Positions 1-26,756 of a stretch of DNA of 64,000 bases are shown one piece after another; position 1 is the first letter of the stretch; every line of letters begins with the position of its first letter. The DNA lies in contig NC_047075.1 in assembly GCF_902459465.1 (NCBI RefSeq), forward strand, positions 2,604,001-2,668,000. The letters are read 5' to 3'. This DNA is from Asterias rubens (lineage: Eukaryota). A program made the position numbers and the translations under genes. The notes below the pieces were generated by a model that was not told the DNA's origin, made no database searches, and saw only the letters and a program-made list of their open reading frames with translations.

Positions 1-43
1 ATCAAAAGCTACTCAACTGTTGTTTATGTGAACAAGCACTTAA

Positions 44-1016: not shown

Positions 1017-1444
1017 TGTACAAATTAGGACTCAATTGGTCAAAGGAATAATGAAAGAAGAAAACAAACACCATCTGGTGCACATTAATGTGTGTGCTTT
1101 AAGATACCTAAAATAGGCTTCAGGCCTGAAGAATTTTACGTTTGAGAGAGAAATTACCTCCTCAAAAAATACGTTACTTCGGGGAGCCATTTCTCAGAAT
1201 GTTTTAAACTATCAACAGCTCTCCATTGCTCATCACCAAGTAAGTTTTTTAAGCTAAACATTATTTTGAGTAATTACCAATAGTGTCCACTGCCTTTAAA
1301 CTATCAACAGCTCTCCATTGCTCATCACCAAGTAAGTTTTTTAAGCTAAAACATTATTTTGAGTAATTACAAATAGTGTCCAGTGCCCTTAAGAAACCAC
1401 TAGTATTAGTATTATTATACACATTTTTGGTACTTTTTTCTCAC

Positions 1445-2165
1445 CTATAACTATAAAGGCAAAACCGGATTGTTGAGTCCTGGCCAACCCGAGTGAAAGC
1501 ACAACATGGCCGGTCGCTTTCACTTTGAAGTTTATCCGGAACTTGAAGGAGGTGCTCAGAGGCTTCAGGATGAATCTAAAACTGTTTGGTTTCGGCTCGG
1601 TGGCGAAGGAGCAAGCTAAAGATATTAAAGGTAAAATTAAATATATCAATAAGATGACGAGTTGTCCTAACCTTTTAGCACCAAGTCTACTTTCTATGTA
1701 TAATGTATCGACGTGTCTTCATAATCTGTATCACAAAGTCGCCTGAATGATTTTTTCACAAAAATATGACAACTCCTGGAGCTCTTTAGCATAAATCAAA
1801 TTAAAACTTACGTGTAGTTCGGCAAGCGTTTCTAAAAGGCTCGAAGGTGCCGTCTACCAACGATAAAACACATTAAAGGGTACCAATATTAAAATGGAGA
1901 ATGCACACAAAAGTATGACAATCAATAGAGTTTACAACTCCCAGCTCTGTACCAGCCATTCAAACAAAAACTTACGCGTCGTTCGGCAAGCGTTTCTGAA
2001 AGCCTCAACGGTTTGATCACCCAAAGACGCGGGGTCCTGCCGGTCTACGGTCCGGACGAGTACACCGCACGAGGCTGCCGTAACCCACAGCACTGCAAAG
2101 TACACGGCGAGACACAAAGTCAAAGCAATGGGTTTGGTAACCATGTAACCGTTTGTAGTAACCAT
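1445..2165 (-). CDS. Secreted Methyltransf_FA (FAMeT-like) domain protein, copy 1 (exons 1-3; exon 4 not in window)
   Basis: Exons 2165-1976 (190 nt, ATG with A at -3 and an upstream in-frame stop, hydrophobic signal PIALTLCLAVYFAVLWVTAASC), 1853-1812 (42 nt) and 1615-1445 (171 nt, CSFATEPKPNSFRF...INFKVKATGHVVLSL...FAFIVIG). All junctions are GT-AG and phase 1. Near-identical to copy 2, whose exon 4 carries the diagnostic domain motifs. Confidence 0.75.
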
Positions 2166-2814
2166 GATGCTTTAAACTCGTAAGTCAACCCTGCGGTGCC
2201 CAAAATCAAAAAGTGGGTTATTTGAGGCGCTCTCTGTCGCTGCAAAACCAACTTCTTGGTGTCGTCGATATGTTGCACTGATTGAGTATGTAGCTCTATT
2301 GCGTTCGACCATGAAGCTATTTATGATTCCACTCAATAAAGTTACCTTGTTGTTGAATTTGTTCCCAATTATCAGTTTGTTAAAGGCGCAGTCGCCATAT
2401 CATGTTGACTCTATAAACCGGCTCTTTTTCAGAGCCAGCACTACTCACAAGCATTCAGACACAAAAAAAACAATAATTGTTTGTATACGCACAATCCTTG
2501 ATAGTACCTTTAAGTCAACAACCTCGTATTAATTACTTGTTGTCCTCCAGCCCTTGCTCTACGAGGATCCAAGCTGATCGATGAAACTTGAGGACACTGC
2601 GTACGAGGTTGACATTGTTTCATATACTTCCCTCTCTACATTTTAAGTCAATATTGCCAAGGCATATTTGAATATAATTTGTTCCGTAAAGACTGTCGAC
2701 CTTTTCTGTCGTATACACCGTGTGCAACAGTAATATAGAAACGATGATTACCATTCGACGAAATGGGTGTCAGACTAATTCCTCCCCAGACCTCTAATGT
2801 TGGCCATTGGGGGA

Positions 2815-3015
2815 AAGAAACAAATTCCAAAAATTCAAAAACCAAGGCAAACAAACAAACAAACAAACATTCCGAACCCTTCTGGTGGCCAATAGGGGGA
2901 GGTAATATACAAACAAAAGCAAACAAACAGACAAGCAAAGTGTCTGAGGCCTATGGGCAGCCATTGGGGGACATACGTAACAAAAGCAAATAAACAAAGC
3001 AAAGGAACTAAACAG
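2815..3015 (+). repeat. Degenerate (CAAA)n low-complexity tract
   Basis: Runs of aaacaaacaaac, duplicated at about 12295-12470. Confidence 0.7.
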
Positions 3016-3228
3016 GTATAAAGTATTGCCATTGACTTTACCCAAGCGTATCTAAGATATCAACTTTCATTCGGATGTTACTTTTTTTTCTCCAAACACA
3101 TGATATTGTGAGGGTTTCCTCCGACCGCTTAGGGCGTCTAATAACTGGGCAACAACAGTAGCTCAAAGGTTTCCATTTTAGTTAATTAAGCGTTGTTGTT
3201 GTTTGTTAGTAAATGGAAGAGCCTTTAA

Positions 3229-3555
3229 AGGCAGTGGACACTTAGTAATTGCTCAAAATAATTATTAGCATAAAACCTTTCTTGGTGACGAGTTATGGGG
3301 AGAGGTTGATGGTATAAAACATTGTGAAAAACGGCTCCCTCTGAAGTGCCATAGTTTTCGAGAAAGAAGTAATTTTTCCACGAATTCAAGACCTCAGATT
3401 TAGAACTTGAGGTCTCGAAATCAACCATCGAAACGTACACAACTTCGTGTGACAATGTTGTTGTTTTCTTTCACTATTAGTATCCCGCAACTTCGATGAC
3501 CGATTGAGCTCAAAATGTCACTGGTTTGTTATTTTATGCATATGTTCAGATACAT
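3229..3555. mobile_element. Kolobok-like MITE family 1, 3'-truncated
   Basis: TTAA-AGGCAGTGGACAC start. The body matches 44-428 and 10387-10765. The right TIR is absent. Confidence 0.75.
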
Positions 3556-4194
3556 ATGTTTTTGAAAGAATAGAAATAATGTTGAATTGAGTTGAAAGTA
3601 CATTCACGGTGCACTTGTCAATGACAGCGCTAATGACGAAAACAAATGAACTGACCCAATCAACAACCGGAGGAACATTAGCTCTTGCCAACACGACGCT
3701 CATTTCGTAAACACAAAAAAACTAATCTTCTTTCATCATGATGATACCGCCAAACACTAATGACTTGGAGTTTAAAGGCACTGGACACTATTGGTAATTG
3801 TCAAATACCAGTATTCTCACGTAACTGCATAAGATAACAAACCTGTGAACATTTGGGCTCAATCGGTTATCGAAGTTGCGAGAAAATGATGAAAGAAAAA
3901 ACTCCCTTGTTGGACGAATTTGTGTGCTTTCAGATAGGAATAAAAGACTTCTAGCTAGAAAGTCTTGTATTATTTTAGAGGGAGTCGTTTGCCACAATGT
4001 TTTATAATATCAACAGCTCTCCAATGCTCGTTACCAAGTCAGTTTTTAAGTTGTTTTAAGTAATTACCAAACGTGTACCTTCCCTTTATAGACACTGAAC
4101 ACTATAGAATTGTCAAAGACCGGTATTCTCACGTGGTGTATCCCAATTGCATAAGATAACTAACCTGTGAAAATTTTGGCTCAATCTGGCAGAT

Positions 4195-4672
4195 TTTGTG
4201 CTTACTGTGCATTTTCTATTTCATAGCACTGCTAATCGTAAGCACACGAAAGGCATGCTAACCTTCCGGTGCTCACCGCACGAAAATGACGTCACAATGC
4301 AAATCTACGGTAAACACGCAATATGGCCGCCCAATTTTTCTGCTAACCTGTGGAATACGCTAAGGCTTAAGCATTTTTTTCTGCTACAGTAAGCACGCAA
4401 ATTTGCTTACCGTTAAGCTGCGCTATGAAATTGGGCCCTGACAGCTGCTTAAGCAAAAAAAATTTGCTTAAGCAAAAAAATCATTGCTTAGTAAAATCAA
4501 ATTACCGGCCAAGACTCCACTCAATTGTTATGCTAAGTAAACAACAGCTAAATACTAGTCATAAGCAATGTATATGGCATGAAATGTTGGCCAGTAACAT
4601 GTGTAAAATAAGCGAGCTATGTTCGTGCTTAAGCATACTTTTTGCTTAAGCAGCTCTATGAAATTGTGCCCA
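4195..4672. mobile_element. Two adjacent GGGCCCAATTTCATAG-type MITEs (putative PIF/Harbinger class)
   Basis: GCTATGAAATTGGGCCC termini at about 4421-4439 and 4655-4671. The paralogous copy at 15392-15902 retains the left TIR. Other family members lie at about 37618-37860, 45053-45290, 46717-46920 and 52989-53350. Confidence 0.65.
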
Positions 4673-5605
4673 GGTCTTGGCCATGGTGCCTCTTAAGTTG
4701 TTTTCCACAGCTTCAAGGCTTCGCAATGGAAATGAAATGGAAATGGCCTTGCCCTTTCAAGATAAATGAGTTGGGGTGGTTCTGTAAAAAAAAAGCACGT
4801 TGGTTTCAACTCGACGTTTCGCTCAGTAAATCGTCTTCTAAAGGAAAAAAAAAGAAAAACGACGATCTGAAAAGTCATATTTGTTGAGAAATAAAGTAAT
4901 CACCCATTTTGGAGTTTATCGCTCAGTGAGCGTTTTATTAATTTTTATTTTTGCATCGATGTCATGCAAACTGTGTACTTGTAATCGGCTTTTCACTTTT
5001 TCTCGTGACCCAGATGGTCGATCGACCTCAAACCTCTACAGGTTTTTCAGTTAATGTATGGTGGATTACATAAAGTGCTTACACTGTCATTAGCAATTTT
5101 TTTTTTTTTTTTTTTGCAAAAAATACTGCTGTAATGTTCCTTTAAATGAACTACAGGTTGTTAGGAGAAGGATAACAACTAAAATGGCTGCCGTGAGAAA
5201 ACGGAAAGGACTTCTGAGAAGCTGTCTTCTAATATGTTTGATGACCAGTCTTCCGATTAGGGGTGGGTAACAAAAAATATAACTTAAAGACAGTGGACAC
5301 CTTTGGTAATTATCAAAGACCAAATAATGCCAGAGATTTGCTATTTATTTATAGTTTCTTCTTATTTCACAAGTTTGTTATTATGTGCATAATATGTTTA
5401 TATCTACAAGTTAGAAGACTGGCCTTTGACAATTACCAATAGTGTCCGGGTATTTAAATAATCGGTAGGTCTCATGTCTTATGAAAGGCACCATTGTTTT
5501 CTACGCTTTTGTCACCAAATAACTATTCGCCATACAACTTGTCGCCAAGCTTATTATTATTATTTGGTGCTGTTTTGTTTTAATATCTCGTTGCTGTGGA
5601 AACGG

Positions 5606-5623
5606 TGACGTCATTGGGTGGAG
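5606..5623 (+). promoter_or_regulatory. CRE (TGACGTCA) plus GT/GC box (GGGTGGAG) upstream of FReD1
   Basis: The motif pair lies 184 nt before the ATG. The same pair, at the same spacing, lies upstream of FReD2 (21285, TGACGTAA) and FReD3 (23195). Confidence 0.45.
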
Positions 5624-5789
5624 CTGAATGCATGCAATTGCTTGCGAGCAAAGATTTGCTTCATTTGATCTGGGAGACTATAGTAACAACAAACTGCAGT
5701 ATCGGGACAGTTTTCCACCTACAGTTAATCGGGACAAAAACATTTTCTCTCAGGTACATTTTCGAAAAGAAAATCTTCAAACATTCATC

Positions 5790-6773
5790 ATGGAAGCTAC
5801 GATCATTATAATATTGGCTCTTAGTTTGATGGTACAAATCGACCAGAGTGCAAGTCAACAACGGTTCATCGAAACACTCTACTTGGCTGAAAACCGAGCC
5901 TTACTTAATCATGGGTTTCAGTGGAAGACTGTATCTTCTCCTGTGATCTGTGGGCGAGACTGCTCTATGGATCCACAGTGTGTATCATTTAACTATCACA
6001 TCATAAGAGGTATCTGTGTGTTGAATGATGCCAGCAGAGCTCACAGCCCTGATGACTTTGTTGCGAGTGAAGGGAGTGCCTACTATGATAACAACTTGGA
6101 CACTTCTTCATTTTCACTACCCAGCACTAGTAGTTGTCTGGAGTTGTATCAAGCTGGTTACCGCATTAATGGTTTATACACCATCTTTCCTACAAGTCTG
6201 ACCACCAGTGGGTTACAGGTTTACTGTGATATGAAGACAGATGGAGGCGGCTGGATCGTGTTCCAGAGGAGACAAGATGGCTCTGTTGACTTTTATCGTA
6301 ACTGGGCCGAATACCAATCTGGGTTTGGTGATCTGCAGAGTGAGTTCTGGTTGGGGAATGATATCATGCGTGACCTTACTGGGTCAGGTCAATGGCGACT
6401 CAGAGTAGATATGGAAGATTGGGAGTCCAACACAGCTTGGGCTTCTTATGATGAGTTCAGTGTTACCGGTAACAAGTACACTCTCCAGGTTGGTTCATAT
6501 GATGCTCAGAGCACAGCAGGTGATGCAATGACATATCATAATGGATTACCATTCACAACAAAGGATCAGGATAATGATGCAAGGTCTGGTTACAATTGTG
6601 CCGAGCGTTATGAAGGTGCCTGGTGGTTTAATGACTGCCTTCATTCTCATCTGAACGGTAAATATTATCCAAGCCAAGATGTCAGCCCATCACGGGGAAT
6701 ACAATGGTACGAGTGGAAAGGAGCTCACGACTCCCTGAAGAAATGCAGCATGAAAATACGGCAAGTTTTGTAA
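5790..6773 (+). CDS. Intronless secreted PAN/apple + fibrinogen C-terminal domain protein (FReD1), 327 aa
   Basis: Signal peptide MEATIIIILALSLMVQIDQSA. PAN-like C-x3-C-x5-C...C (CGRDCSMDPQCVSFNY...C). FBG motifs VYCDM-x-TDGGGWIVFQRR-x-DGSVDF, GFGDLQSEFWLGN, FTTKDQDND, WWFNDC and SMKIR. Confidence 0.93.
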   Translation: MEATIIIILALSLMVQIDQSASQQRFIETLYLAENRALLNHGFQWKTVSSPVICGRDCSMDPQCVSFNYHIIRGICVLNDASRAHSPDDFVASEGSAYYDNNLDTSSFSLPSTSSCLELYQAGYRINGLYTIFPTSLTTSGLQVYCDMKTDGGGWIVFQRRQDGSVDFYRNWAEYQSGFGDLQSEFWLGNDIMRDLTGSGQWRLRVDMEDWESNTAWASYDEFSVTGNKYTLQVGSYDAQSTAGDAMTYHNGLPFTTKDQDNDARSGYNCAERYEGAWWFNDCLHSHLNGKYYPSQDVSPSRGIQWYEWKGAHDSLKKCSMKIRQVL

Positions 6774-6798
6774 CTATCAACCCATTGACCGGGGACAG

Positions 6799-6883
6799 GG
6801 AATAAAATGGAATGACTGGAGTGGGGATTATTAATTACTCCCTCAAATAATGCAGCATGAAAATACGACAACTTAAACTCTAA
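6799..6883 (+). pseudogene. Orphan, degenerate FBG C-terminal fragment downstream of FReD1
   Basis: Reads GIKWNDWSGDY*..YSLK*CSMKIRQLKL*, homologous to the last ~28 codons of FReD1/2. Confidence 0.75.
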
Positions 6884-9029
6884 CCTTGGGATTACGGGAC
6901 AAGAATGATTGACTTGTTGAACTGGAAAGGTTATTTTTGCTGCAGCTGAGAAATGCCCCAAGATTCTCCTTACGAACACAGAGATCAACAACACATCTAC
7001 GGTATTATTTTTAATCGCGTTTAACATTATCAATGGGTTTGTTTTTAAGGAAGAAAAAAATGTTATCAAAAACTGCAACAAAAACAAATTCATATAAAGT
7101 CAACGTGGAAAGATGAACTTAAAAATCAAAAGGCTAGAATGTCTTTGACAAAGGAACTGCCAACTGTTTGTTGGTGGTAAAAGGGACAATACGAAGACTT
7201 TCACAGCGGTATATTTTTATAACCATCATTCTAAAGTTGATTTCCATTCAGTATACAAACATCGGTAATATAAATTCATTAAATATTAGATATGGACTGT
7301 TTGACTATTGCAGTGGGATAAAAAGTTATCACATATTGTAGAATGTTCTTCACTGTAATTTTGACATTTTATGATCATAGTAGCATAGTGTTGTGATTTG
7401 TGTTGTGAAGCAAACTTTAAGCAAAATGTGCCTTTAAGCAAATGGTCCAATGAAGTAGTATTTAAAATTGTCAAGTGTCGATAAATGTATTTTTGTAAAC
7501 GTTTTTTTAACAAAACATTGCAGTGTCTTTGCCGTGCGATCACACGGCAACGACACTGCCGGTTTTAAACGGCCGTTTAAGAACTCGTCGCTACCCTTTT
7601 ATTCCCTTCGTTATAATACAAAACATATCTGTGCGTACAAATATTGTGTAATTGTTTAGGTGCACAACAGCCGTTGGTAGTAGAGTGGTTCACAGTGGTA
7701 CTTCAGTGCTGTTATTGGTAGGACTTATAGAATTTAATTATTTACATTTTAAAACATTAATGTTAACTATTGTGGAATGTTGAGAAGAGAATTAGAAAAA
7801 CAGATTGTTGTAGTCCCACATACATTGCATGAAAATACTGATTGTTAAAGCGCCTTGAGTGTCAATGAGTGGCGCATATGAGCACTATAAGAAACCAATA
7901 TTATCATAAGAAATGATAAGAAACCGTCAACAAGATTTCCTCGATTGTTTTAGCGCTCTGTTAGAAAAAAACAACACCTGCAAACGACGCTTCATTGAGC
8001 ACTCCCTTTACACGGTCATTCTAATTCAATAGCAATTCTAACTGTGTACACATTCAACGGAATAAATAACTCAACGCTAACCCAATGAAACACGTATCCG
8101 GATCCCGCTAATAATCAAATCAGTCGAGATACGTCTGCACTTTTCCCGCCAAAATTGCTTCATTATGGCGGGAACTGATCCCCATCGCAGAGTGTCAGAT
8201 GTTTATACTGTACAATAGGGGGCGCTCTAATTTGTTGCAGGAGGCGTGTCCAACGGCACTTCCGTATCTTGATATGATAATTGACTCAGCAAATTTTCAG
8301 TTAATTTGCGAGAACGCATAGATAAAAACGTTGCCTGAACTTCAGACGTACGGGCAACTAAACATTTTCAAAATAAATGCAATGCTATCATCGTTTGTTT
8401 ACCGATTCTTATCGTGCATTAAATTTGTTTCCCTTTAAACATAACAACAATTTTCCGTAAACTTGAATTCTCACAATCGTTTTGATTTACTAGAATTCCC
8501 CCCCTAACAAAACCTTCACCCATTGTGCAGAAGTGACCCCCCCCCCCCCAATCTTGCTCAATGTGTGCTCTGACCTGTGTCCCTAAAATCCTACAAGGAA
8601 TTCCTGAAATTTCCAGAACACAATAGACAAACAATAGGAGGCGAGGGTTGTACATCAAGCCCATAGATGCACCAAATACAGGTTGAAAGCAACACTACGT
8701 GTGTCAAGCAGGAAATGTCCTCTGGACATGTCGTGTAAATCATGTATGTGGACACTATTTTTAAAAGGGAATGAAAGCACAGCCTACGACCTGTCATGTT
8801 GAGAATTGATCATGAAGGAATTGTCGGAGAGAGAACTGACAGAGGTGAGTTTCTTTTTTTTCTCGTGTTGTTTTGAGGCTTGCTTTTTGTGTTCTTCAAT
8901 AAGCTTGCCATCTTGTGTCTTGGTCCCTGTAGTATCCATGTGTGTATTCATGTACGACCCTGATAGCAACCAGCCTATTTTTTTTATTTACACGTTCGGT
9001 TGTGCTGTGGCATTGGGTTTCATACGTCG

Positions 9030-9640
9030 GGGAAAAGTTTCCTTATGGCGCCACCACTTTTTCTTCTTCTTCTTCCTCTTCCTTATAAAGTGCAGCCTTC
9101 AAAATGGTTGAAGATGTACGCACTGCGTGTGAGCGCATGTGTTGACTTAGGCAACAGGAATTTGTGTCAGGTGCAGGTAGAATTCGATATGAAATAATAC
9201 CTAATTTACCTCAATGAGACATCCCTTTTTGTAAAAATGAGTAAACAAAAGTGGTGGCGCCATACGGAAAGTAAGGCGTAATAAAACTGGGTCCAGAAAT
9301 AAGATACATTCAAGAAACAATGTTCTCCTTTGTTTTTGATCGTGAGCCTCAATTTAATTATATCTTTCGCGCGTTCGTGATTTATTTACACAACATTTAC
9401 AATAGATAATGCTAAATTGTTTATCAGTAGAATTTTAAACAACTTTTAGACTAACCCTGTTGGTGCTTTACATTTCTACTTACAATGTTTATGAGTGAAC
9501 ATTCATTATGGAAAAGTTTCCGTATGGCGCCACCACTTTTTCATTTGATATGAAATAATATAGTATCTAATTTACGTCATTGAGATATCCTTTTCGGTAA
9601 AAATGAGTGAAAAGGTGGTGGCGCCATACGGAAAGTTATC
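9030..9640. mobile_element. Two MITE copies with TTTCC(G/T)TATGGCGCCACCAC / GTGGTGGCGCCATACGGAAAG TIRs
   Basis: Inverted repeat pairs at about 9030-9275 and 9511-9640 with shared internal sequence. Confidence 0.65.
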
Positions 9641-10049
9641 CGGGGTGGTTATTCATTGGTGATTATATCTTCATTAGCAATCAATTTGTTGTTGAGGCAG
9701 TCAAAAAATTACTTCGTACTACTTTAGATCTTATAGATGAGGTATAATAAGAAAAGAGAATTTTCTGTTGATAAAAAAGAGGGCGCTGTTTGACTTTATT
9801 TGCAGGTGTGTTATGTTATGCTGTTTGCCCCCCTCCCCCCGACCTCGCTGTTTGTCAGCCAAAACTAAATACATCCAATAATTGGTTTGTTGTTTTCTGT
9901 CCAACGAATTATACACTATTGTTTAACAATAGTGTAACATTCTTAACCCTCTGCCTGTGTTGAGTTCCCATTATGGGGAACAAAATCTCCGGGAGACAAA
10001 CTCAGAAACGACTTCACTTACAGATTGGGGTCAATGGTGCTTATTATAG

Positions 10050-11632
10050 TTACTCACAATATTGATAAAACACCCAGTCCCCGTGGTATGTGCTCCAAGT
10101 AGAGATACCAACATGCACAAAATCAGGCGTTGCATTTAGATGTGCGGTGACGTCAGCCAGCGTGAAACCCTGACTCTGTCCCCCTTTGCCCACCGTGATA
10201 GCGCCCCCTATCCACTCGATCCAGAAGGGCCGATATTCATCACTAGAGACCAGTCCATCTTCATTGTGTGAGAACAGGAAAGTGGATGACGGGCATCCGT
10301 CATAGCATACCCCAATCCCGGCATTCATTTCCCCTGGACCGGATGATCCTACTCCTGAAAATAGTAATAAATGGAAGAGTCATTAAAGGCAGTGGACACT
10401 ATTAGTAATTGCTCAAAAGAATTATTAGCATAAAACCTTTCTTGGTTACGAGTAATGGGGAGAGGTTGATGGTATAAAACATTGTGAAAACGGCTCCCTC
10501 TAAGGTGCCATAGTTTTCGAGAAAGAAGTAATTTTTCCACGAATTTGAATTCAAGACCTCAGATTAAGAACTTGAGGTCTCGAAATCAACCATCTAAACG
10601 CACACAACTTCGTGTGACAATGATGTTTTTTTCTTTCATTATTATCTCGCAAGTTCGATCATCGATTGAGCTCAAATTTGCACAGGTTTGTTATTTTATA
10701 CATATGTTGAGATACACCAAGTGAGAAGGCTAGTCTTTGACAATTACCAATAGTGTCCACTGCCTTTAAACTATCAACAGCTCTCCATTGCTCATCACCA
10801 AGTAAGTATGTTAAGCTAAAACATTATTTTGAGTAATTACAAATAGTGTCCTGTGCCTTTAAGAAACCACTAGTATTAGTATTATCATACACATTTTTGG
10901 CACTTTTTTCTCACCTTATATCTATAAAGGCAAAACCGGATTGTTGAGTCCTGGCCAATCCGAGTGAAAGCACAACATGGCCGGCCGCTTTCACTTTGAA
11001 GTTAATCCGGAACTTGAAGGAGGTGCTCAGAGGCTTCAGGATGAATCTAAAACTGTTTGATTTCGGCTCGGAGGCGAAGGAGCAAGCTAAAGATATTAAA
11101 GGTAAAATTAAATAATATCAATACGATGACGAGTTGTCCTAACCTTTTAGCACCAAGTCTACTTTCTATGTATAATGTATCGACGTGTCTTAATAATCTG
11201 TATCACCAAGTCGCCTGTTGTTCACAAAAATATGACAACTCCTGGAGCTCTTTAGCATAAATCAAAATTAAAACTTACGTGTAGTTCGGCAGGCGTTTCT
11301 AAAAGGCTCGAAGGTGCCGTCTACCAACGATAAAACACATTAAATGGTACCAATATTAAAACGGAGAATGCACACAAAAGTATGACAATCAATAGAGTTT
11401 ACAACTCCCAGATCTGTACCAGCCATTCAAACAAAAACTTACGTGTCGTTCGGCAAGCGTTTCTGAAAGCCTCAACGGTTTGATCACCCAAAGACGCGGG
11501 GTCCTGCCGGTCTACGGTCCGGACGAGTACACCGCACGAGGCTGCCGTAACCCACAGCACTGCAAAGTACACGGCGACACACAAAGTTAAAGCAATGGGT
11601 TTGGTAACCATGTAACCGTTTGTAGTAACCAT
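10050..11632 (-). CDS. Secreted Methyltransf_FA (FAMeT-like) domain protein, copy 2 (4 exons; carries a +1 frameshift as assembled)
   Basis: Exons 11632-11443, 11320-11279, 11086-10915 (172 nt versus 171 in copy 1) and 10354-10050. Exon 4 encodes GLVSSDEYRPFWIEWIGGAITVGKGG...VHVGISTWSTYHGDWVF, the FWIxW-xx-GxIxVG and HVGxST-x4-GDW motifs of the Methyltransf_FA domain. The protein would be 235 aa if the extra base were removed. Confidence 0.75.
10387..10765. mobile_element. Kolobok-like MITE family 1 in intron 3 of FAMeT-like copy 2
   Basis: Both TIRs present, with TTAA at 10383-10386 and 10766-10769. Confidence 0.8.
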
Positions 11633-12904
11633 GATGCTTTAAACTCGTAAGTTAACCCTGCGGTGCCCAAAATCAAAAAGTGGGTTATTTGAGGCGCTCT
11701 CTGTCGCTGCAAAACCAACTTCTTGGTGTCGTCGATATGTTGCACTGATTGAGTATGTAGCTCTATTGCGTTCGACCATGAAGTTATTAGCTCCAGGATT
11801 CCACTCAATAAAGTTACCTTGTTGTTGAATTTGTTCCCAATTATCAGTTTGTTAAAGGCGCAGTCGCCATATCATGTTGACTCTATAAACCGGCTCTTTT
11901 CAGAGCCAGCACTACTCACAAGCTTTCAGACAAAAAAAAAACAATAATTGTTTGTATACGCACAATCCTTGATAGTACCTTTAAGTCAACAACCTCGTAT
12001 TAATTACTTGTTGTCCTCCAGCCCTTGCTCTACGAGGATCCAAGCTGATCGATGAAACTTGAGGACACTGCGTACGAGGTTGACATTGTTTCATATACTT
12101 CCCTCTCTACATTTTAAGTCAATATTGCCAAGGCATATTTGAATATAATTTGTTCAGTAAAGACTGTCGACCTTTTCTGTCGTATACACCGTGTGCAACA
12201 GTAATATAGAAACGATGATTACCATTCGACGAAATGGGTATCAGACTAATTCTAATGTTGGCCATTGGGGGAAAGAAACAAATTCCAAAAATTCAAAAAC
12301 CAAGGCAAACAAACAAACAAACAAACATTCCGAACCCTTCTGGTGGCCAATAGGGGGAGGTAATATACAAACAAAAGCAAACAAACAGACAAGCAAAGTG
12401 TCTGAGGCCTATGGGCAGCCATTGGGGGACATACGTAAACAAAAGCAAATAAACAAAGCAAAGGAACTAAACAGGTATAAAGTATTGCCATTGAATTTAC
12501 CAAAGCGTATCTTAGATATCAACTTTTATTTGGATGTTCCTTTTTTTTCTCCAAACACATGATATTGTGAGCGTTTCCTCCGACCGCTTATAGGGCGTCT
12601 AACTGGGCAACAACAGTAGCTCAAAGGTTTCCATTTTTAGTTAATTAAGCGTTGTTGTTGTTTGTTAGTTGTTTTGTTCGTATTCGTACGTCCTCTGTTT
12701 GTCCGTTTATCTTGTCTCTGTCTGTCTACGGGCTGATTACTGCAAGCCTCGGCTTATCAAACCGGCCTCCATACTGTTTCTTTTCTTTGTACTACACACT
12801 ACTATGTTTGCTATTACAATGTATACGCTTCTCTTAATATGCTAGCATGACGTCACCATTCTATATACCCAAAACGAGGCCATCGGCGCAGCCACATGCA
12901 ACTA

Positions 12905-17010: not shown

Positions 17011-17368
17011 AGACACTGGACACTGTTGGTAATTGTCAAATACCAGTCTTCTCACTTAGTGTATCTCAACATAAGCATAAATAAACAAACCTGTGAAAAA
17101 TTGAGCTCAATTGGTCGTCGAGGTTGCGAGATAAATGAAAGATAAAAACAAACCTGTCACACGACGTTATGGTTTTCACATGCTTGATTTTGAGACCTCA
17201 AATTCTAAATCTGAGGTCTTGAAATCAAATTCGTGGAAAATTATTTCTTTCTGGAAAACTATGTCACTTCATGTTTTATACCATCAACCTCTCCCTATTA
17301 TTGTTACCAAGTAAGGTTTTATGCTAATAATTATTTTGAGTAATTACCAATAATAGTGTCTACTGCCT
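17011..17368. mobile_element. Kolobok-like MITE family 1 (inverted)
   Basis: TTAA-AGACACTGGACAC ... GTGTCTACTGCCT-TTAA. Confidence 0.75.
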
Positions 17369-17949
17369 TTAAGTTCAAATTTTCACAGACCTTTTATTTT
17401 TAAGCATAATGTTGAGACACACTAAGTGAGAACTGGGCCCAATTTCAAAGAGGTGCTTAAGCAAAAGATACTGCTTAAAACTCCAGTTATGAGCAGGATA
17501 CCAATCACAAATTGTACATGTGACAATGTGTGCTTGTGCAGCTCTATGAAATTTGGCCGTGGTCTTTGACAATATCCAGAACTGTAAAGTGTCTTTAAGA
17601 AACACACACACATTCTTGTAAATGAAGACGGACGGTCCCAAACCAATCGATATGTTGTTTGTGTTTAGCTGTGCCGTTGTCAGAGTGCCCTGTTGCAGTG
17701 CCGTTAATCTCAGATCGATCCAAAATGGCCGATCAGCGAGAGTATTGACTGGCGCTTATAAGCCAAATACTCTAAGCACAACATTGCATTGTGACCAACT
17801 GCAGTCAACGATGACCGATTGAGAACATTATACATTATTGCCGGTATTACAATGTTACAGTGGTAACCATAAACCTTAAACCAATGCATTAACACGAGCT
17901 CCAAACGCTTCGAAACTTTTTTATTTTTATTTTTTATGAACAAGCCATC

Positions 17950-18300
17950 TCATCTTACTTATCTGTCTAGCCTATTTCACTCCACTGCTGGAGGAAAGCC
18001 TCTTCACAAATTATCCATCTCACTCTATCCTGCGCTGTTTGTTGCAAAGCAATGCCCCTGTATGTACTTAGTTTATCTCTCCACCTTCTATTTCGTCTCC
18101 CTCTTTTTCTTGTCCAGTTTCTTGGAGTCCAATTGGTTGTTTTGCGTGCCCCCCTGTTGTCATACCTCCTTGCTAGGTGACCTGCCCATCTCCACTTCTT
18201 TGAGTTAATGGTCTTATTAATTTCATGCACTCTTGATTTCTTTCTAAGGTCTTGTTTATTATGCTTATCAAACACATCTGTGAAAGCCGTCACCAATTGG
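17950..18300 (-). mobile_element. RTE-clade LINE 3' fragment
   Basis: Translation KKWRWAGHLARRYDNRG...WTPRNWTRKRGRRNRRWRD...AQDRVRW...EEAFLQQW is the typical RTE ORF C-terminus. Confidence 0.85.
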
Positions 18301-21300
18301 GAATAATTCTTAACTAGGCAAAGTGAAAGAGTGTGGCACCCGGTGCACGAAGTGTCTGGCTTTTAGCACCAGCCTCAAAACGTTACGCAACCAAGCCCAG
18401 TCTTAACTATCGATATATCTCAAATGTTTTGTCAAGTACCCTTCTTGTTTCACTTTATACACAGCTTGGGGTGTATTTTGACGCTGGACCAAACCCTTGG
18501 ATATCGTGCGGAATCTTAAAGAAACATTACAGAATTGGTAAGCAACAAAACTCGTTTAAGATCACAGATTTACATGGAACTAACAGGGTCAAATGATGTT
18601 TTAGTTTAGTTCATTTGGTTTGACTCTTTTCAGCGCTTTGATCTCAATGAAAAGACGCTTTACAAATGCACTGTTGTAATGTATGTATTTCTGTAAGTAT
18701 ATTTGATGAGAAATTTTATTTTTAATAAAACTAATGTCCCGTTTGAAGTTTACAGCCCAGTGAGCGTTTTAATCATTTGTTTTGAATCGATGTCATGCAA
18801 TGGGTTTTTCACTATTTTCTCGTGACCTAGATGGCTGATCGATCTCAAACTTCTCCTGGTGGTTTGTCAGTTTATGTAAACGGTGGATTACATAAAGTAC
18901 TTACACTGTCAGCAACTTTTTTTTTTAGCAAGCAAATTCTGTAATGTTCCTTTAAATGAACTACAGGTTGTTAGGAGAAGGATAACAACTACAATGGCTG
19001 TCGGGAGAAAACGGAAGGGACTTTTGAGAATCTGTCTTCTCATGTGTTTGATGATCAGTCTTCCGATTGGGGGTGAGTAACAAAAAATATAACTTAAAGG
19101 CACTGCCGTCAATTTCACAAAACTCTTCCTGACTTAGGATTAATCTTATGACTTAGGACGAGTCCCAACCCTGCAGTGTAGCATGCAGACCTTAAGATTA
19201 ATCCTAAGTTAGGCTAACTCGGGATAAGACGAGTCCTAACTCTTTATGAAATCGACGGCTGTTGTATCCCCACTTATACATTAAATAACAAACATGTGAA
19301 AATTAGGGCTCAATTGGTCCACGAAGTTACAAAAGAATAATGAAAGAAAAAACACCCTTGTTGCATTACTTTGTGCTTTCAGATGCATAATAAAAAACTT
19401 CAACTGAATAATTTTATTATTTGAGTGGAAAAAGACATCTTTCTCAAATACTACGTCACTTCAGAGGGAGCTGTTAGTCACAGTGTCCGGTGCATTTAAA
19501 GGCATGCACTGGACACTATTGGTAACACTCAAAATAATTGTTAGCATAACACCATACTTTGTAATGGGTAGTGGAGAGCTGTTTGTAGTATAAAACATTG
19601 TGAGAAACGACTCCCACTGAAGTAACGTAGTTTTTACGAAAGAAGTGATTTTACACGAATTTGATTTCGAGAACTCAGGTTTAGAATTTGAGGTCTCAAA
19701 ATCAAGCATCTGAAAGCACACAACTTTAAGACACATTGTCATAAATTTAAAGGCAGGGTCATACTTAACGTATTTTTTTTAGAGAGGTCATTACTCACTC
19801 ACATGTTAAAAGACTTCAGGCCTGAAGCCTTTTTAGGCATCTCAAAGCACACACATTGTGCAACAAGGGTGTTTTTTTATTATTCTCATTTAAATTAGTC
19901 AACATTTTCACAGATTTGTTACTTTATGCCTATGTTGGGGTACACCAAGTGAGAATACTTGTCTTTGACATTTACCAAAGGTGTCCAGTGCATTTAAACC
20001 TTTGTCGTGCAAGGAGTTTTTTGGGTAAGCCATTTTTGAGGCAACCGTTTGCACTACTTAGAGTAGCATTGCGAAGTCAATTGGCAATTGTTGTAACAGT
20101 GTCTTTACTTAAAAGTAATGTATACCTTTGGTATTTGGAACCAGTCGACTGTTTTAATCCTATATAAATGTACGGAACAAAGTCAACCTGCGTTCGAAAG
20201 TTGGTCGCGTTTTCGAGATATGTCAACGCAAGAAGAAAAACCCAGAAATAATTAATCATGAAATAATTTAGCTCTTGCCAACTACCACACGATCAATTTG
20301 TAAATACACAAGTGCTGTTATGTAACCATAGTGATACTGTCGAATACTAATTCCTTTGGCGATTAATCAGTTTGAGCATTTTGATGCCGGGTAAAAGGCT
20401 TCCAAATCTATTAAAGGAACATTAAAAAAAAAAAAAAAAATGAATATTATTAATATAACATAATTTGTTAAAAAAAACAAAAATCGTCTAAGATCACAGA
20501 TTAACATCGGTCTAATGATGATGATAGAAATATTTCTGTCTGAAATGTCAAATTTGTTGAGAAATAAATAAAAACAATTTCCCATTTGGAGTTTATCACT
20601 CAGTGAGCGTTTTATTAAATTTTGGTTAATCGATGTCGTGCAAAATGTGTAATCGGTTTTTCACTATTTTCTCGTGACCCGCAGGGCTGATCAATCTCAA
20701 ACTTATACAGGTTTGTTTATGTACATGGTGGATTACATGAAGTGCTTACACAGCCAGCAACTGTTTTATTAGCAACAACCAATTCGTAATGTTCCTTTAA
20801 TTTCATCCTAATGAAATAATCATCACCACAACAATTATTGGTAGCCGGTTGACGAGAGGCACTTAATGTTCCCTGGGGACATCTCGCTTCTGAACATGAA
20901 ATTGTATGCTAATCATTGCCAATATTAGCAACGGTTCACCAAAATCATCCTAGCTTAGGATTAATTTTATGACTTGGGATGAGTAAAGTTCCCTATCCGA
21001 CGACGTAGGACGTAGACTTGTGGACAAGTCGTTAAATCGGCCCCACGCGCTGAGATAGTAGTCTCGCGAGATCACTGCTCTCGCGCGAACTGATGGCTCC
21101 TCGATTTCGACTCTTAATGAGCCAACACTCACCCTAAGAGATTTACTATTTATTTATAGTTTCTTCTTATTTCACAAGTTTGTTATTATATGCATAATAT
21201 GTTTATATCTACAAGTTAGAAGACTGGCCTTATTATTTTTATTTGGTGCTGTTTTGTTTTAATATCTCGTTGCTGTGGAAACGGTGACGTAATTGGGTGG

Positions 21301-21468
21301 AGCTGAATGCATGCAATTGTTTGCGAACAAAGATTTGGTTCATTTGATCTGGGAGACTATAGTAACAACAAACTGCAGTATCGGGACAGTTTTCCACCTA
21401 CAGTTAATGGGGACAAAAACATTTTCTCTCTGGTACATTTTCGAAAAGAAAATCTTCAAACATTCATC

Positions 21469-22437
21469 ATGGAAGTTACGATCATTATAATATTGGCTCT
21501 TAGTTTGATGGTACAAATCGACCAGAGTGCAAGTCAACGACGGTTTATCGAAACGTTCTACTTGGCCGAAAACCGAGCCTTACTGAATCATGGGTTTCAG
21601 TGGAAGACTGTATCTACTCCTGTGATCTGTGGGCGAGACTGCTCTATGGATCCACAGTGTGCATCATTCAACTATCATACAAATAATGTTTGTATGTTAA
21701 ATAATGCCAGCAGAGCTCACAACCCTGATGACTTTGTTGCGATTCAAGGGAGTGCCTACTATGATGACAACTTGGACACTTCTTCGTTTTCACTACCCAG
21801 CACTAGAAGTTGTTTGGAGTTGTATCAAGCTGATTACCGCATCAATGGTTTATACACCATCTTTCCTACAAGTCTGACCACCAGTGGGTTACAGGTTTAC
21901 TGTGATATGGAGACAGATGGAGGCGGCTGGATCGTGTTCCAGAGGAGACAAAATGGCTCTGTCAACTTTGACCGTACCTGGGCTGAATACCAATCTGGGT
22001 TTGGTGATCTGCAGAATGAGTTCTGGTTAGGGAATGATATCCTGCGTGACCTTACTGGATCGGGTCAATGGCGACTCAGAGTAGATATGGAAGATTGGAA
22101 GTCCAATAAATCTTGGTCTTCTTATGGTGAGTTCAATGTTACAGGTGACAAGTACACTCTCCATGTTGGTTCATATGATGCTCAGAGTCCAGCAGGTGAC
22201 TCAATGGCATTTCATAATGGGCGTCAATTCAGTACAAAGGACAATGGCAATGCTCAAAACTGTGCGGTGAGATACAAGGGTGGCTGGTGGTATGCCAGTT
22301 GCTTTTATGCTAATCTGAACGGTGAATACTACCCGCATGGTTATGTGTCTGTTAGTCAGGGAATACAGTGGACACACTGGAGAGGACACTTCTACTCCCT
22401 CAAGAAATGCAGCATGAAAATACGGCAAGTAAAATAA
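21469..22437 (+). CDS. Intronless secreted PAN/apple + fibrinogen C-terminal domain protein (FReD2), 322 aa
   Basis: Paralogue of FReD1 with the same signal, PAN and FBG motifs. The 3' quarter is strongly diverged (FSTKDNGNAQNC, WWYASCFYANLNG). Confidence 0.93.
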   Translation: MEVTIIIILALSLMVQIDQSASQRRFIETFYLAENRALLNHGFQWKTVSTPVICGRDCSMDPQCASFNYHTNNVCMLNNASRAHNPDDFVAIQGSAYYDDNLDTSSFSLPSTRSCLELYQADYRINGLYTIFPTSLTTSGLQVYCDMETDGGGWIVFQRRQNGSVNFDRTWAEYQSGFGDLQNEFWLGNDILRDLTGSGQWRLRVDMEDWKSNKSWSSYGEFNVTGDKYTLHVGSYDAQSPAGDSMAFHNGRQFSTKDNGNAQNCAVRYKGGWWYASCFYANLNGEYYPHGYVSVSQGIQWTHWRGHFYSLKKCSMKIRQVK

Positions 22438-22489
22438 ACTCAAACTCTTACCCAGAGTTGGGCCATGGTTGGATTGAACAGAATGTTCC

Positions 22490-22695
22490 CGTGGCGTGTT
22501 GTGGCCGTTAGGGTTAGATCACCGGATTCAAGCTCGGGTACGACGTTTCTGATCAGCAGGATGTGGGTTCGAGTCCCGGTCATGACTCTCGTGTCCTTAA
22601 GCAAGCCACTTAACCAGTATTATTAACTCGTCCTTCGGAGGGGACGTTAAGCTGTTGGTCCCGTGCGTTGTGTGATGCACGTTAAATATCCCGGT
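22490..22695 (+). mobile_element. tRNA-derived SINE, 3'-truncated
   Basis: A-box-like GTGGCCGTTAGGG and B-box GGTTCGAGTCCC, followed by the non-tRNA body GTGTCCTTAAGCAAG-CACTTAACC. A partial copy lies at about 47500-47620. Confidence 0.75.
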
Positions 22696-23377
22696 AACCC
22701 ACATTTTCACAGGTTTGTTATTTTATGCAAATGTTGGGATAAACCAAGTGAAAACAAAGGTCTTTGACAACTAACTATCAAACAGGTCCAGTGCCTTTGA
22801 GATAGACAACCGGGACAAAACTAAAGTTGTTTTTACATGTTTTGTGGGTAGCTTCTGCGTTTTGGTATTATGGGTTTTTTTTTCATGTTGGCAGGGGTAG
22901 TTGAACATAAAAAGTGACAATAAAACCTGTTGACACATTAGTCCATAACAAATGATTTTCTAAAGCAGGGAACCGCGAAGATATTTTTCTCACAAATATA
23001 CTCTGTTGTATAGCAGTAATACGTTCTCGCACCTTTTGGCAATCATCAGATGTGTGTGGGTGGTTATAAATTAATCAGTAGGTTCCATGACTTACTGTTT
23101 TCTATGATTTTGTTAGCATGATCTGTCGCCAAGGTTATTACGTGGTCGGGTGGTTTTGCTGTGTTTTGCTAATATTTCATTGCTGTGGGAATGATGACGT
23201 CAGTGGGTGGAGCTTATTGCATTAAAAGTGTTGGCGACCAAAGATTTGGTTCATTTGATCCGTCTGTGTCAAGGAGTAGCTGTCAGTGTCAGGACAACTT
23301 TCAACCAACAGTAAAGAGGGAAAGAAAATTACAATTTTCTCTCTGATACTTGAAAATAGATTCCAGGAATATTCATC

Positions 23378-23766
23378 ATGGAAGTTATGATCACAATCTT
23401 GGTTCTGATTTTGGTGGTACAAATCTGCCAGAGTGCAAGTCAACAACGGTTCATCGAAACACTCTACTTGGCTGAAAACCGAGCCTTACTTAATCATGGG
23501 TTTCAGTGGAAGACTGTATCTTCTCCTGTGATCTGTGGGCGAGACTGCTCTATGGATCCACAGTGTGCATCATTCAACTATCACATCATAAGAGGTATTT
23601 GTGAGTTGAATAATGCCAGCAGAGCTCATAGCCCTGATGACTTTGTTGCGAGTCAAGGAGTCCACAGGGAGAGGTGACATATGGACTGGGAATACAATGG
23701 TTCAGCTGGAAAGGACATAAATACTCCCTGAAGAAATGCAGCATGAAAATACGGCAAGTTGTGTAA
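23378..23766 (+). pseudogene. FReD3: signal + PAN domain fused out of frame to the last 34 FBG codons (about 600-nt internal deletion)
   Basis: Codons 1-94 match the FReD1 N-terminus. From 23662 a shifted frame reads PQGEVTYGLGIQWFSWKGHKYSLKKCSMKIRQVV*. As assembled, the ORF stops at 23677 (99 aa). Confidence 0.8.
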
Positions 23767-23790
23767 CTATCAACCCATTGACCAGGGACA

Positions 23791-23871
23791 CTAATAAAGT
23801 GGAATGACTGGAGTGGGGATTATTACTCCCTCAAGAAATGTAGCATGAAAATACGACAACTCGAACTCTAA
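23791..23871 (+). pseudogene. Orphan, stop-free FBG C-terminal fragment downstream of FReD3
   Basis: Reads LIKWNDWSGDYYSLKKCSMKIRQLEL*, preceded by an in-frame TGA at 23779. Confidence 0.75.
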
Positions 23872-24680
23872 CCTAGGGTTCATGGGACATGAATTGACTG
23901 ACTTGTTGAACTGGAAAGGTTATTGATTGTGCTGCTGAAAGAAATAACCGGAGACTCTCCTTAAAGGATTTGGGTGCTTTTTGTAACACAAAACACATCG
24001 CCATAGATTTACATTAAACTTACACCATTTGAAGATAGTGATAATATAAAGCTAACCTTGAAGAATTAGATGCTGAGGTGCTGTAGTTTTTGAGAAATTA
24101 GTAAAACAATATCATGAAAATACGTTTTTACATGCTAAATAATTTTCGTCTCTTGATCAGTGAGGCGAAAATTATTTTCATGATATTGTTTTACTCATTT
24201 CTCAAAAACTACAGCATCTCAGCAACTGATATTTTCAGGGAAGCTTTCTGCTATCATTATCTTCAAACTGTGTAAGCTTGGTATAAATCTGTGGACATGG
24301 GGTTTTAGTCCAACAAAAGTACATAGATCAACAACTCATCAACGGTGGGATTTTTAATTGCGTTTAACATTATCAATGTTTAAAAAATAAAATAAAAAAA
24401 AACTGCACCAAAAACAACCTCCTATATAAAGTGAACGTGAAAAACTTAAAAATCAAAAGGCTAAAATGTCTTTGACAAAGGAACTGCCAACTGTTTGTTG
24501 GTGGTAAAAGGGACAATACGAAAACCTTCACAGTGGTATATTTTTAAAATCATCATTCTAAAGTTGATTTTCATTCAGTATACGAACGTCGGAAATATAA
24601 AATCATTAGATAAAGACTGTTTTATTATCATTGTAGAATGTTCTTCACTAGAATTTGTCATTTGACATTTTATGATCATA

Positions 24681-25200
24681 GTATACAAATATTGACTGCT
24701 TCGAGTGCTATGGTTAAAACTATGACTCCCGAGGTGATCCCCGGAGCGTTCTATTTTCCCGAGGCGAAGCCGAGGGAAAATAGAACGCTCCGGGGATCAC
24801 CGAGGGAGTCATCGTTTTGACCATTGCACGAGTAAAAGCAGTCAATATTTGTTTTATAACACCCCAAACATTTCTAAATACTGTACTATTATTATTAAGT
24901 TACAGACCTGAATGCTACAATCCACGGACGACGCGAATACAGATTGCAAAAACTTTTACTGTGCTGCATGTAGTGTCGTGCAATCCGAAATGGTTACAGA
25001 CTATGTTTTCATATTAATTATCATTCTCGTACACGCAACGGGCGTCTGGGTACTGCACGCCGTGTGTTAGTCTTCGGACTAGCGCACGGCAAACCGACGC
25101 ACTATCACACGGCCGTCGTCTAGCAAAACTAAGACATGTCATGTGACGCGCTCTTAACCAATGAGCAGGCAGAATACTTGTAATGGGTGTTATAGCTTTA
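24681..25200. mobile_element. Insertion with a palindromic CCGAGGCGAAGCCGAGG core (class uncertain)
   Basis: Absent from the paralogous sequence at about 7380, where TATGATCATAG runs almost directly into GTGTTGTGATTTG. Contains an inverted repeat CCCCGGAGCGTTCTATTTTCCC...GGGAAAATAGAACGCTCCGGGG. Confidence 0.55.
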
Positions 25201-25543
25201 CCAAGTGTTGTGATTTGTGTTGTGAAGCAAATTTAGGTAGAAGTTTGTTTCAAACCTTTCAAGCGGTCAGCGATTTTGTTTTGAATTTTGAAAACTTTTA
25301 TCTGCTTAATTGTTGAATGGAAGATCGAACATGCTTTTTGTAGATCTCAAAATTGCTTGTGCTATTTAAAGCATTGGACACCTTTGGTAATTGTCAAAGT
25401 TGACTCAATTGTTTATCGAAGTTGCAAGAGAATAGTTAAAGAAAAAACACCAACGCTGCACAATGTGTGTGCTTTCAGATGCATAATAAAGGGCTTCAGG
25501 CCTAAAGAATTGTCTTATTTGATTGAGAAATTACCTCTTTTAA

Positions 25544-25924
25544 AGGCAGTGGACACTATTGGTAATTACTCAAAATATTTATTAGCATAAAACCTTACTT
25601 GGTAACGAGTAATGGGGAGAGGTTGATGGTATAAAACATTGTGAGAAACGGCTCCATCTGAAGTGCCATAGTTTTCGAGAAAGAAGTAATTTTCCATGAT
25701 TTTGATTTCGAGACCTCAGATTTAGAACTTGAGGTCTCGAAATCAACCATCTAAACGCACACAACTTCGTGTGACAAGGGTGTTTTTTCTTTTTTCATTA
25801 GTATCTCGCAAGTTCGATGACCGATTGAGCTCAAATTTTCACAGGTTTGTTATTTTATGTATATGTTGAGATACACCAACTGTGAAGGCTAGTCTTTGAC
25901 AATTACCAATAGTGTCCACTGCCA
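25544..25924. mobile_element. Kolobok-like MITE family 1
   Basis: Full length, with TIRs and TTAA flanks. Confidence 0.8.
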
Positions 25925-26756
25925 TTAAAAGAAACTACGTTACTTCAGAGGAGCCTTTTCTAACACCGTTTCATATCAACAGTAGCTCGTTACCAAGTAA
26001 GTTTTTATGCTAAAAATCATTTTGAGTTTTGTGTCCAGTGCCTTTAAGCAAATGATCACATATTGTAGAATGTTCTTCACTGTAATTTTGACATTTTATG
26101 ATCATAGTAGCATAGTGTTGTGATTTGTGTTGTGAAGCAAACTTTAAGCAAATGTGCCTTTAAGCAAATGGTCCAATGAAGTAGTATTTAAAATTGTCAA
26201 AGTGTCGATAAATGTATTTTTGTAAACTTTTTTTAACAAAACATTGCAGTGTCTTTGCCGTGCGATCACACGGCAACGACACTGCCGGTTTTAAACGGCC
26301 GTTTAAGAACTCGTCGGTACCCTTTTATTCCCTTCGTTATAATACAAAACATATCTGTGCGTACAAATATTGTGTAATTGTTTAGGTGCACAACAGCCGT
26401 TGGTAGCTTCATTAGGCTGACATTCTAAGATATGAGTTTGAAGATCAGTCGAACAGCAACATTGTTTTCTGAAATATTGAATTTATGAAGTGTTAAATCT
26501 GAGGACTGGAAACTCCAGTGAATTGTTGTTTTTATCTGATTGGCCAAAAAATTACCAGAAAAAAAATCAACATGAGCGTGTTTAAGAAAAGACTTTTTGA
26601 AATTGTATTTTCTCTTTTAATTCACATTTTTTTCTTGGTATTGATGTATGTAAACCTTAGATTAGTAAATAAAATAGAAATTACCTTCAGAAGGACAATT
26701 CTTACTTTCACCTGGTACCTTTTAGTGTTGACAATGTAAACATCGTTGTGTATAAT

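Follow-up and report, generated by a model that had tools for sequence, protein, structure and literature searches.

A young tandem array in Asterias rubens probably pairs diversifying PAN-fibrinogen genes with decaying FAMeT-type passengers

When two different genes are duplicated together, are they kept together because they work together, or have they been copied as neighbours? This question is raised by a locus on contig NC_047075.1 (C15) of the sea star Asterias rubens, where a repeated unit carries a plus-strand single-exon gene encoding a PAN and a fibrinogen (FBG) domain, referred to here as the FReD gene, head to head with a minus-strand three-exon gene for a Methyltransf_FA domain, referred to as the FAMeT-type gene. 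We analysed a window of 64,000 nucleotides (C15:2604001-2668000; coordinates without a prefix are window positions) together with 40 kb of its left flank. A first-pass annotation of the window had described two units and proposed that the two products form a co-regulated secreted module. Our results point to a young tandem segmental duplication in a lectin-rich region of C15 rather than to a selected two-gene module, and we consider this reading probable. Since the FAMeT-type passenger copies appear to be decaying, the pairing would be a case of hitch-hiking in a duplicated segment.

The array was delimited by self-BLAST of the window and the left flank, a total of 104 kb without Ns or gaps (the G+C content of the window is about 39%). 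Four tandem units, A to D, start at -19981, -12837, -2517, and 7810, with a period of about 10.3 kb. Units A+B align with units B+C in one continuous 16.7 kb alignment at 98.4% identity and an offset of 10,342 bp, and the A/B and B/C junctions have the same structure. Head-to-tail units, a constant period, and common junctions identify the array as a tandem segmental duplication. Units 1 and 2 of the first-pass annotation correspond to our units C and D. The self-comparison returned the repeat units that it had described, but four of them rather than two, with two more to the left of the window; its statement that the head-to-head genes were copied jointly stands, since both genes lie inside the tandem unit in A to D.

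Each of the collinear blocks reported earlier between units C and D was reproduced, in matches of hundreds to thousands of bases with 77-99% identity. The matching segments are 1272-3210 and 10742-12669 (96.3%), 3680-4186 and 14441-14947 (96.5%), 4188-4769 and 15419-15998 (96.7%), 5550-6766 and 21229-22430 (88.4%), 6692-6972 and 23685-23963 (84.5%), 6978-7382 and 24321-24683 (77.7%), and 7328-7680 and 26055-26406 (98.9%). These blocks far exceed chance expectation. In a whole-genome PF12248 search, the FA exon matches of the array were found at C15:2586254, 2593385, 2603786, and 2614068, all on the minus strand. A whole-genome search with the FReD protein as the query located the FReD copies, all on the plus strand, at C15:2588981 (95% amino acid identity), 2599329-2600447 (with stops), 2609628 (in the window), and 2625307 (82% amino acid identity). 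The coordinates of the features in the window are collected in Table 1.

Table 1. Features of the FReD/FAMeT-type array in and beside the window (window positions unless prefixed with C15).
Feature	Position	Strand	Remarks
Unit C, window part	1-7810		Unit begins 2517 bases left of the window; units A and B further left
Unit D	7811-26406		Repeat-expanded; apparent age mosaic
PAN+FBG (FReD) gene, unit C	5790-6773	+	Single coding exon, 327 aa from Met55; frame open from 5628
PAN+FBG (FReD) gene, unit D	21469-22437	+	Frame open from 21307 (376 aa)
Internally deleted second PAN-FBG copy, unit D	23369-23763	+	Residues 52-149 joined to 348-381; PAN_1 E 4e-7; tblastn
FAMeT-type exon 1, unit C	1976-2165	-	ATG at 2165; signal-peptide-like hydrophobic start; GTAAGT donor, phase 1
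FAMeT-type exon 2, unit C	1445-1615	-	N-terminal half of FA domain; end in phase 1
FAMeT-type exon 3, unit C	C15:2603691-2603979	-	Just off the window; 22-nt and 1-nt deletions
FAMeT-type exon 1, unit D	11443-11632	-	Met and hydrophobic signal-like segment; GTAAGT donor, phase 1
FAMeT-type exon 2, unit D	10915-11086	-	Pyrimidine-rich acceptor; extra A at 10916/10917
FAMeT-type exon 3, unit D	10053-10354	-	C-terminal half of FA domain; stop 10053-10055; intact; needs phase-1 donor
High-copy repeat of about 390 bp	10383-10769		Inside FAMeT intron 2, unit D
Other copies of the repeat of about 390 bp	40-432, 3225-3554, 17007-17372, 25540-25928, 33036-33273, 50348-50717, 53829-54192, 55049-55437
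Unit D-specific intergenic insertion	12670-14440		Repeat-rich; no Pfam domain
Unit D-specific stretch upstream of FReD gene	15999-21228		Repeat-rich; old diverged matches to 4866-5295

As judged from the sequence, the three-exon model of the FAMeT-type gene is sound. Exon 1 of unit C aligns with the N-termini of small FAMeT-domain proteins of asteroids. The minus-strand open reading frame (ORF) 10053-10379 of unit D matches Methyltransf_FA with a Pfam E-value of 1.2e-8. Exon 3 scores 35.2 bits in unit D and 37.3 bits in unit A against a PF12248 cut-off of 24.2, the match covering positions 71-136 of the 140 positions of the hidden Markov model (HMM). Exon 2 alone obtains no Pfam score; in alignments with asteroid homologues it matches the N-terminal half of the domain. 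Exons 2 and 3 are separated by an intron at about HMM position 50, where most FA matches in the genome begin; this phase-1 intron is conserved in a paralogue at C12:1672890-1673570 and in Patiria, where the three-exon layout recurs. When exons 1 and 2 of unit C are combined with exon 3 of unit D, the composite is a 220-aa ORF that aligns end to end with the small asteroid proteins (190-245 aa) and has the motifs FRxxCR, EYRPFW, VGKGGQ, and WVFY..C in common with them. The presumed secretion and the adhesive-protein context of such domains argue for a structural or binding role rather than for an enzymatic one as a farnesoic acid O-methyltransferase.

Beyond the array, the closest FAMeT paralogue in this genome is only 40-47% identical. 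An exhaustive protein search with exon 3 returned 62 relatives, the second of which, after a near-copy from ENA, has 45% identity, and a word-index protein search returned one ENA cluster only. Among 1.8 billion representative proteins, the only close match was an ORF from an ENA metagenome, and no annotated orthologue in A. amurensis, Patiria, or Acanthaster was seen in the exon 3 protein searches.

None of the four units in the assembly has an ORF that is intact across the Methyltransf_FA domain. Of the three exons, unit A retains only the third. In unit C, two copies of the 390-bp repeat, at 40-432 and 3225-3554, enclose a segment (433-3224) that includes exons 1 and 2; in the corresponding place, unit A has one hybrid copy. 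Because a single hybrid copy replaces the two flanking ones, exons 1 and 2 of unit A would have been lost by repeat recombination, and the pattern indicates the signature of a repeat-mediated deletion of 2.8 kb. Units B and C have in common a 22-nt deletion directly after the acceptor of exon 3, corresponding to 10327-10348 of unit D. Exon 3 of these units consequently requires a phase-2 donor, whereas their exon 2 ends in phase 1. Exon 3 of unit C has an additional 1-nt deletion at about C15:2603790, which we regard as unreliable. Unit D carries one extra A at 10916/10917 compared with units B and C and with an independent scaffold from an ENA metagenome (L009), changing the donor from phase 1 to phase 2. 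When units C and D are read as spliced, stops appear shortly after the junction, and we infer the same premature stop for unit B because exon 1, the end of exon 2, and the 22-nt deletion are common to B and C. Of these lesions, the 22-nt deletion common to B and C and the loss of 2.8 kb from unit A appear robust, and the FAMeT-type neighbours at this locus are probably pseudogenes. The first-pass annotation had assigned each unit a minus-strand secreted Methyltransf_FA gene. Its orientation and signal-like start were borne out, whereas an intact gene was not; the domain assignment holds for exon 3 only, which lies off the window in its unit 1 and to the left of its listed block in its unit 2.

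The plus-strand gene of units C and D is open. The ORFs 5628-6770 and 21307-22434 encode a PAN domain followed by a full Fibrinogen_C domain according to Pfam, in agreement with the secreted-type PAN+FBG gene that had been annotated in each of the two units. In units C and D, respectively, the E-values are 1.4e-72 and 2e-69 for Fibrinogen_C and 2.4e-7 and 2e-6 for PAN_1. Scores of 244.6 and 234.1 bits against a cut-off of 22 (HMM positions 2-219 of 221) place both proteins in the FReD family (PF00147), and scores of 30.9 and 27.8 bits against a cut-off of 21.4 support the PAN/apple assignment (PF00024). Translation likely starts at Met55 (5790 and 21469), ahead of a hydrophobic signal-like segment. 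A protein identical to the 327-aa product of unit C is recorded in a protein collection (P0001). Ficolins in the strict sense have a collagen-like domain N-terminal to FBG, which was not found here; because Pfam detects PAN_1 rather than Collagen upstream of FBG, "ficolin-like" is an automatic name only. In four sea stars, members of the PAN+FBG family are annotated as ryncolin-, ficolin-, techylectin- (techylectin-5-), or MFAP4-like, and a literature search found no paper describing the sea-star PAN-FBG family. By analogy with the family, these proteins are most likely soluble and recognise carbohydrates of the acetyl-sugar type. The 418 Mb genome holds 502 FBG candidates (PF00147), many of them on C15.

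The FReD copies differ from one another to very unequal degrees. Between units C and D, protein identity is about 81%, the nucleotide difference is 11%, the synonymous divergence (dS) is 0.24, and the ratio of non-synonymous to synonymous divergence (dN/dS) is 0.46. Between units A and C (C15:2588981-2590123, or L003:4981-6123, compared with 5628-6770), dS is 0.02 and residues 1-322 are identical except for one. The last 58 codons of the same two copies show 29 non-synonymous and about 4 synonymous differences. This part of the protein is presumably the ligand-binding P subdomain. The C-terminal segment of unit A is 93% identical to that of a paralogue at C15:3281740 and 86% identical to that of unit C. 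The variation fits a segmental (cassette) exchange by gene conversion, or else very strong selection on the binding end of the protein.

Units A, B, and C differ from one another by 0.3-4%, and the gene pair appears to have evolved as one unit in these three. Compared with the other units, unit D shows 2.3-3.6% substitutions at 7810-15998, 11-24% divergence at 18728-24683 (the FReD gene and its surroundings), and 1.1% substitutions at 26055-26406. By this measure, unit D combines young with old segments in a mosaic. It is possible that an old duplicate was homogenised on the FAMeT side, or that the FAMeT side is a young copy that came to lie next to an older FReD paralogue. No Pfam domains were found in the ORFs of the unit D-specific insertions. 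The repeat of about 390 bp occurs more than 10 times in the window and reaches a depth of about 1e6, compared with about 10 for unique DNA, in public runs from two differently labelled organisms. An Rfam search of 1-27000 gave no match; thus, by that test, the repeat is not a recognised tRNA- or 7SL-derived family.

The alternative that survives best concerns the number of units: B and C could be one real unit that was assembled twice, from two haplotypes or through a mis-stitched repeat, in which case the true array has three units. Over the 10,296 aligned bases of units B and C there are only 34 substitutions (0.33%) against 46 one-base indels, and their FReD genes differ by 2 substitutions and 8 small indels. 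With unit A as the reference, the indels fall in the right part of unit B and the left part of unit C. They form a contiguous indel-rich stretch at about C15:2598160-2603480 (window about -5840 to -520; L004), which spans the B/C junction and has almost no substitutions. Such a spectrum looks like consensus error in a near-identical repeat. The absence of Ns and gaps and the structural identity of the A/B and B/C junctions speak against double assembly, and a very young true duplicate that defeated polishing would look the same. Nor does this explanation apply to C versus D, given the repeat insertions, the 11% diverged FReD gene, and the different lesions of unit D. We consider a double assembly of B and C doubtful, though a real possibility. 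The view that the FReD gene of unit B is a true pseudogene was set aside for the same error-like spectrum.

The first-pass annotation suggested a co-regulated secreted pair with a function in defence, mucus, or adhesion; on this view, the two genes would have been amplified because they are useful together. The divergent orientation is preserved in every unit, both products have signal-peptide-like starts, and the genome has PAN domains joined to FBG domains as well as to FA domains. Extracellular FAMeT domains also occur in the tube-foot adhesive proteins Sfp1, 3, 4a, 5, 7, and 8 of A. rubens (PMC9382459), and scaffold L009 suggests that an intact FAMeT-type version exists somewhere. Against these points stand the lesions in all four FAMeT copies, three of which are robust. 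The ATG spacings of about 3.6 and 9.8 kb given earlier were reproduced (3625 bp from 2165 to 5790 in unit C, and 9837 bp from 11632 to 21469 in unit D). The intervening DNA contains copies of the 390-bp repeat as well as other repeats, and this geometry leaves no compact shared promoter; the ATGs are further apart than the roughly 1 kb of a bidirectional-promoter pair, and the adjacency was not found in the A. amurensis and Patiria loci compared. Moreover, the two sides of unit D diverge by 2-3% and 11%, respectively, which argues that the gene pair did not evolve as one conserved cassette.

The pairing was not found elsewhere in the loci that were compared. No FBG domain was detected by tblastn near any of the about 10 FAMeT loci outside the array that were compared, out of roughly 30 in this genome, with flanks of ±10 kb at eight or nine of them and smaller or one-sided flanks at C12, C17, and C18. 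No FAMeT exon was found in the A. amurensis locus with the best FReD match (23.6 kb, four PAN-FBG copies). At a FAMeT cluster of Patiria miniata and a FAMeT locus of A. amurensis, which encode the closest FAMeT-type proteins, FAMeT neighbours were present and FBG was absent. Adjacent PF12248 and PF00147 genes, for which the first-pass annotation had proposed a search in this and related genomes, were seen at none of these loci. We estimate from the 502 FBG candidates in 418 Mb that the chance of at least one of about 30 FAMeT loci lying within 5 kb of an FBG gene is about 30%. One chance adjacency is unsurprising because the PAN-FReD family is hugely expanded and dense on C15. Contigs from public runs guessed to be RNA, matching 5700-11699, are probably DNA, because they cover intergenic DNA and have no splice joints across the FAMeT introns. 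Taken with the disrupted FAMeT copies and the long repeat-containing intergenic DNA, the missing pairing at the other loci compared leaves the co-regulated module quite unlikely.

Several points nevertheless weigh against the reading of a hitch-hiking, decaying passenger. Scaffold L009, which is 98% identical, joins a phase-1 (B/C-type) end of exon 2 to an intact exon 3, with an intron of 365 bp that lacks the 390-bp repeat. Unless L009 is chimeric, an intact FAMeT-type copy or allele may exist in another animal. The lesion of unit D consists of a single base and is only probable; the indel-to-substitution ratio of this unit against B and C is ordinary. The single-base lesions in the stretch of about 5 kb in B/C, including all FReD frameshifts of unit B, are unreliable. 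The neighbourhood comparison took in only about a third of the FAMeT loci, and none of the relatives' loci that lack the pairing (L008, L030, and L031) is proven to be syntenic. If an intact FAMeT gene persists in some haplotypes, it could form, with the divergent PAN-FReD neighbour, a lineage-specific secreted two-protein cassette that varies in copy number. In that case, the FA-domain partner might, for example, present or modulate the lectin in mucus, adhesion, or defence. We regard such a cassette as very unlikely.

The remaining scenario, which the first-pass annotation had named as a threat to its own reading, treats units C and D as uncollapsed haplotypes of one locus; it has in its favour only the high identity of some blocks, and we rejected it as scarcely credible because the two units stand in tandem on one gapless contig with more units to the left, their FReD ORFs differ at 11% of nucleotides with a dS of 0.24, their FAMeT lesions are different, and unit D is longer by kilobases of repeats and contains a further FReD copy with an internal deletion.

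Under the favoured reading of a young tandem duplication with a decaying passenger, a unit of about 10.3 kb would by chance have held two unrelated neighbours, a single-exon PAN+FReD gene and a divergent three-exon FAMeT-type gene. Unequal crossing-over, a mechanism suggested by dispersed repeats at the unit boundary and inside the unit, would have amplified this unit to three or four copies. The FReD copies would then have stayed open and diversified further, chiefly in their last 58 or so codons. The FAMeT passengers would have decayed by different routes: repeat recombination in unit A, a 22-nt frameshift in units B and C, and in unit D a one-base insertion that breaks the phase-1 splice.

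On this account, the locus is one more case of birth-and-death evolution, in an invertebrate lectin family of very large size. It may also serve as a small case study in which repeats drive both amplification and gene loss, and in which otherwise identical FReD copies differ sharply at the ligand-binding end. For annotation, it carries the warnings that the FAMeT-type neighbours are probably pseudogenes and that the consensus quality of part of the array (B/C, about C15:2.598-2.6035 Mb) is doubtful. The locus would be of greater importance only if the FAMeT-FReD pairing were functional and conserved, and the evidence here speaks against it.

Some further observations were made on the array and its gene families. 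At 7500-7810, the tandem-unit boundary coincides with a moderately repeated element, whose depth is about 3300 in the bin 7500-7699 compared with about 10 nearby; this element may have served as a substrate for unequal crossing-over in the formation of the array. Intron 1 of the FAMeT-type gene contains a second copy, 42 nt long, of the terminal part of exon 1 (1812-1853 and 11279-11320, minus strand). This copy is bounded by an AG acceptor and a GTAAGT donor of its own, and its inclusion would preserve phase 1. It may represent either an alternative exon or a mini-exon that arose by duplication. A third, partial copy of the PAN domain is found at 23360-23674 of unit D. Short orphan stretches similar to the FBG C-terminus stand just behind the FReD stops (6793-6874, 23782-23865, C15:2590146-2590227, and C15:2600470-2600551), and a tandem run of FBG C-terminal-like fragments of about 84 bp each was seen at C26:487019-487799. 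PAN exons closely precede Methyltransf_FA exons in the same orientation at C15:3569001-3571375 (L021/L022) and C2:3847802-3849233 (L023/L024), with further such loci at C23:3522695-3524117 and 3533989-3535446 (L017/L018), which suggests a family of PAN+FAMeT-domain genes in this starfish.

As a rule, gene pairs are called bidirectional when less than about 1 kb separates their start sites. The array resembles pairs with a shared promoter in its divergent orientation and differs from them in the distances between its ATGs, 3.6 and 9.8 kb, and in the transposon-like repeats that lie there. A second comparison is offered by the footprint (adhesive) proteins of A. rubens, of which Sfp1, Sfp3, Sfp4a, Sfp5, Sfp7, and Sfp8 contain FAMeT domains (PMC9382459). 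They have an extracellular-type Methyltransf_FA domain in the same species as the array gene but, unlike it, are large multidomain proteins (PMC9382459). In the table of that study, the FAMeT-containing Sfp proteins are mostly assigned "6", probably a chromosome; none of these proteins contains a fibrinogen domain or is reported beside one, and the word "fibrinogen" does not occur in the paper (PMC9382459).

The small FAMeT-domain proteins of asteroids (Patiria miniata XP_038066315 and XP_038067281, Acanthaster XP_022100078, and Asterias amurensis XP_071797213), some of which are automatically named "CPAMD8", are like the array gene in their three exons and hydrophobic, signal-peptide-like start. 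Unlike them, the array gene has a 4-residue insertion in the region of the IGGW motif and is disrupted in every copy of the assembly; these relatives also form FAMeT-only clusters without FBG neighbours. The FReD genes of the array, for their part, differ from ficolins (collagen), snail FREPs (IgSF), and coiled-coil types in that their N-terminal partner is a PAN/apple domain. They are like members of the FReD/FREP families, such as horseshoe-crab tachylectin-5A/5B, snail FREPs, and sea-star ryncolin-, ficolin-, and techylectin-5-like proteins, in their full-length C-terminal Fibrinogen_C domain, secreted-type N-terminus, and tandem clusters, and in the concentration of variation in the C-terminal ligand-binding part.

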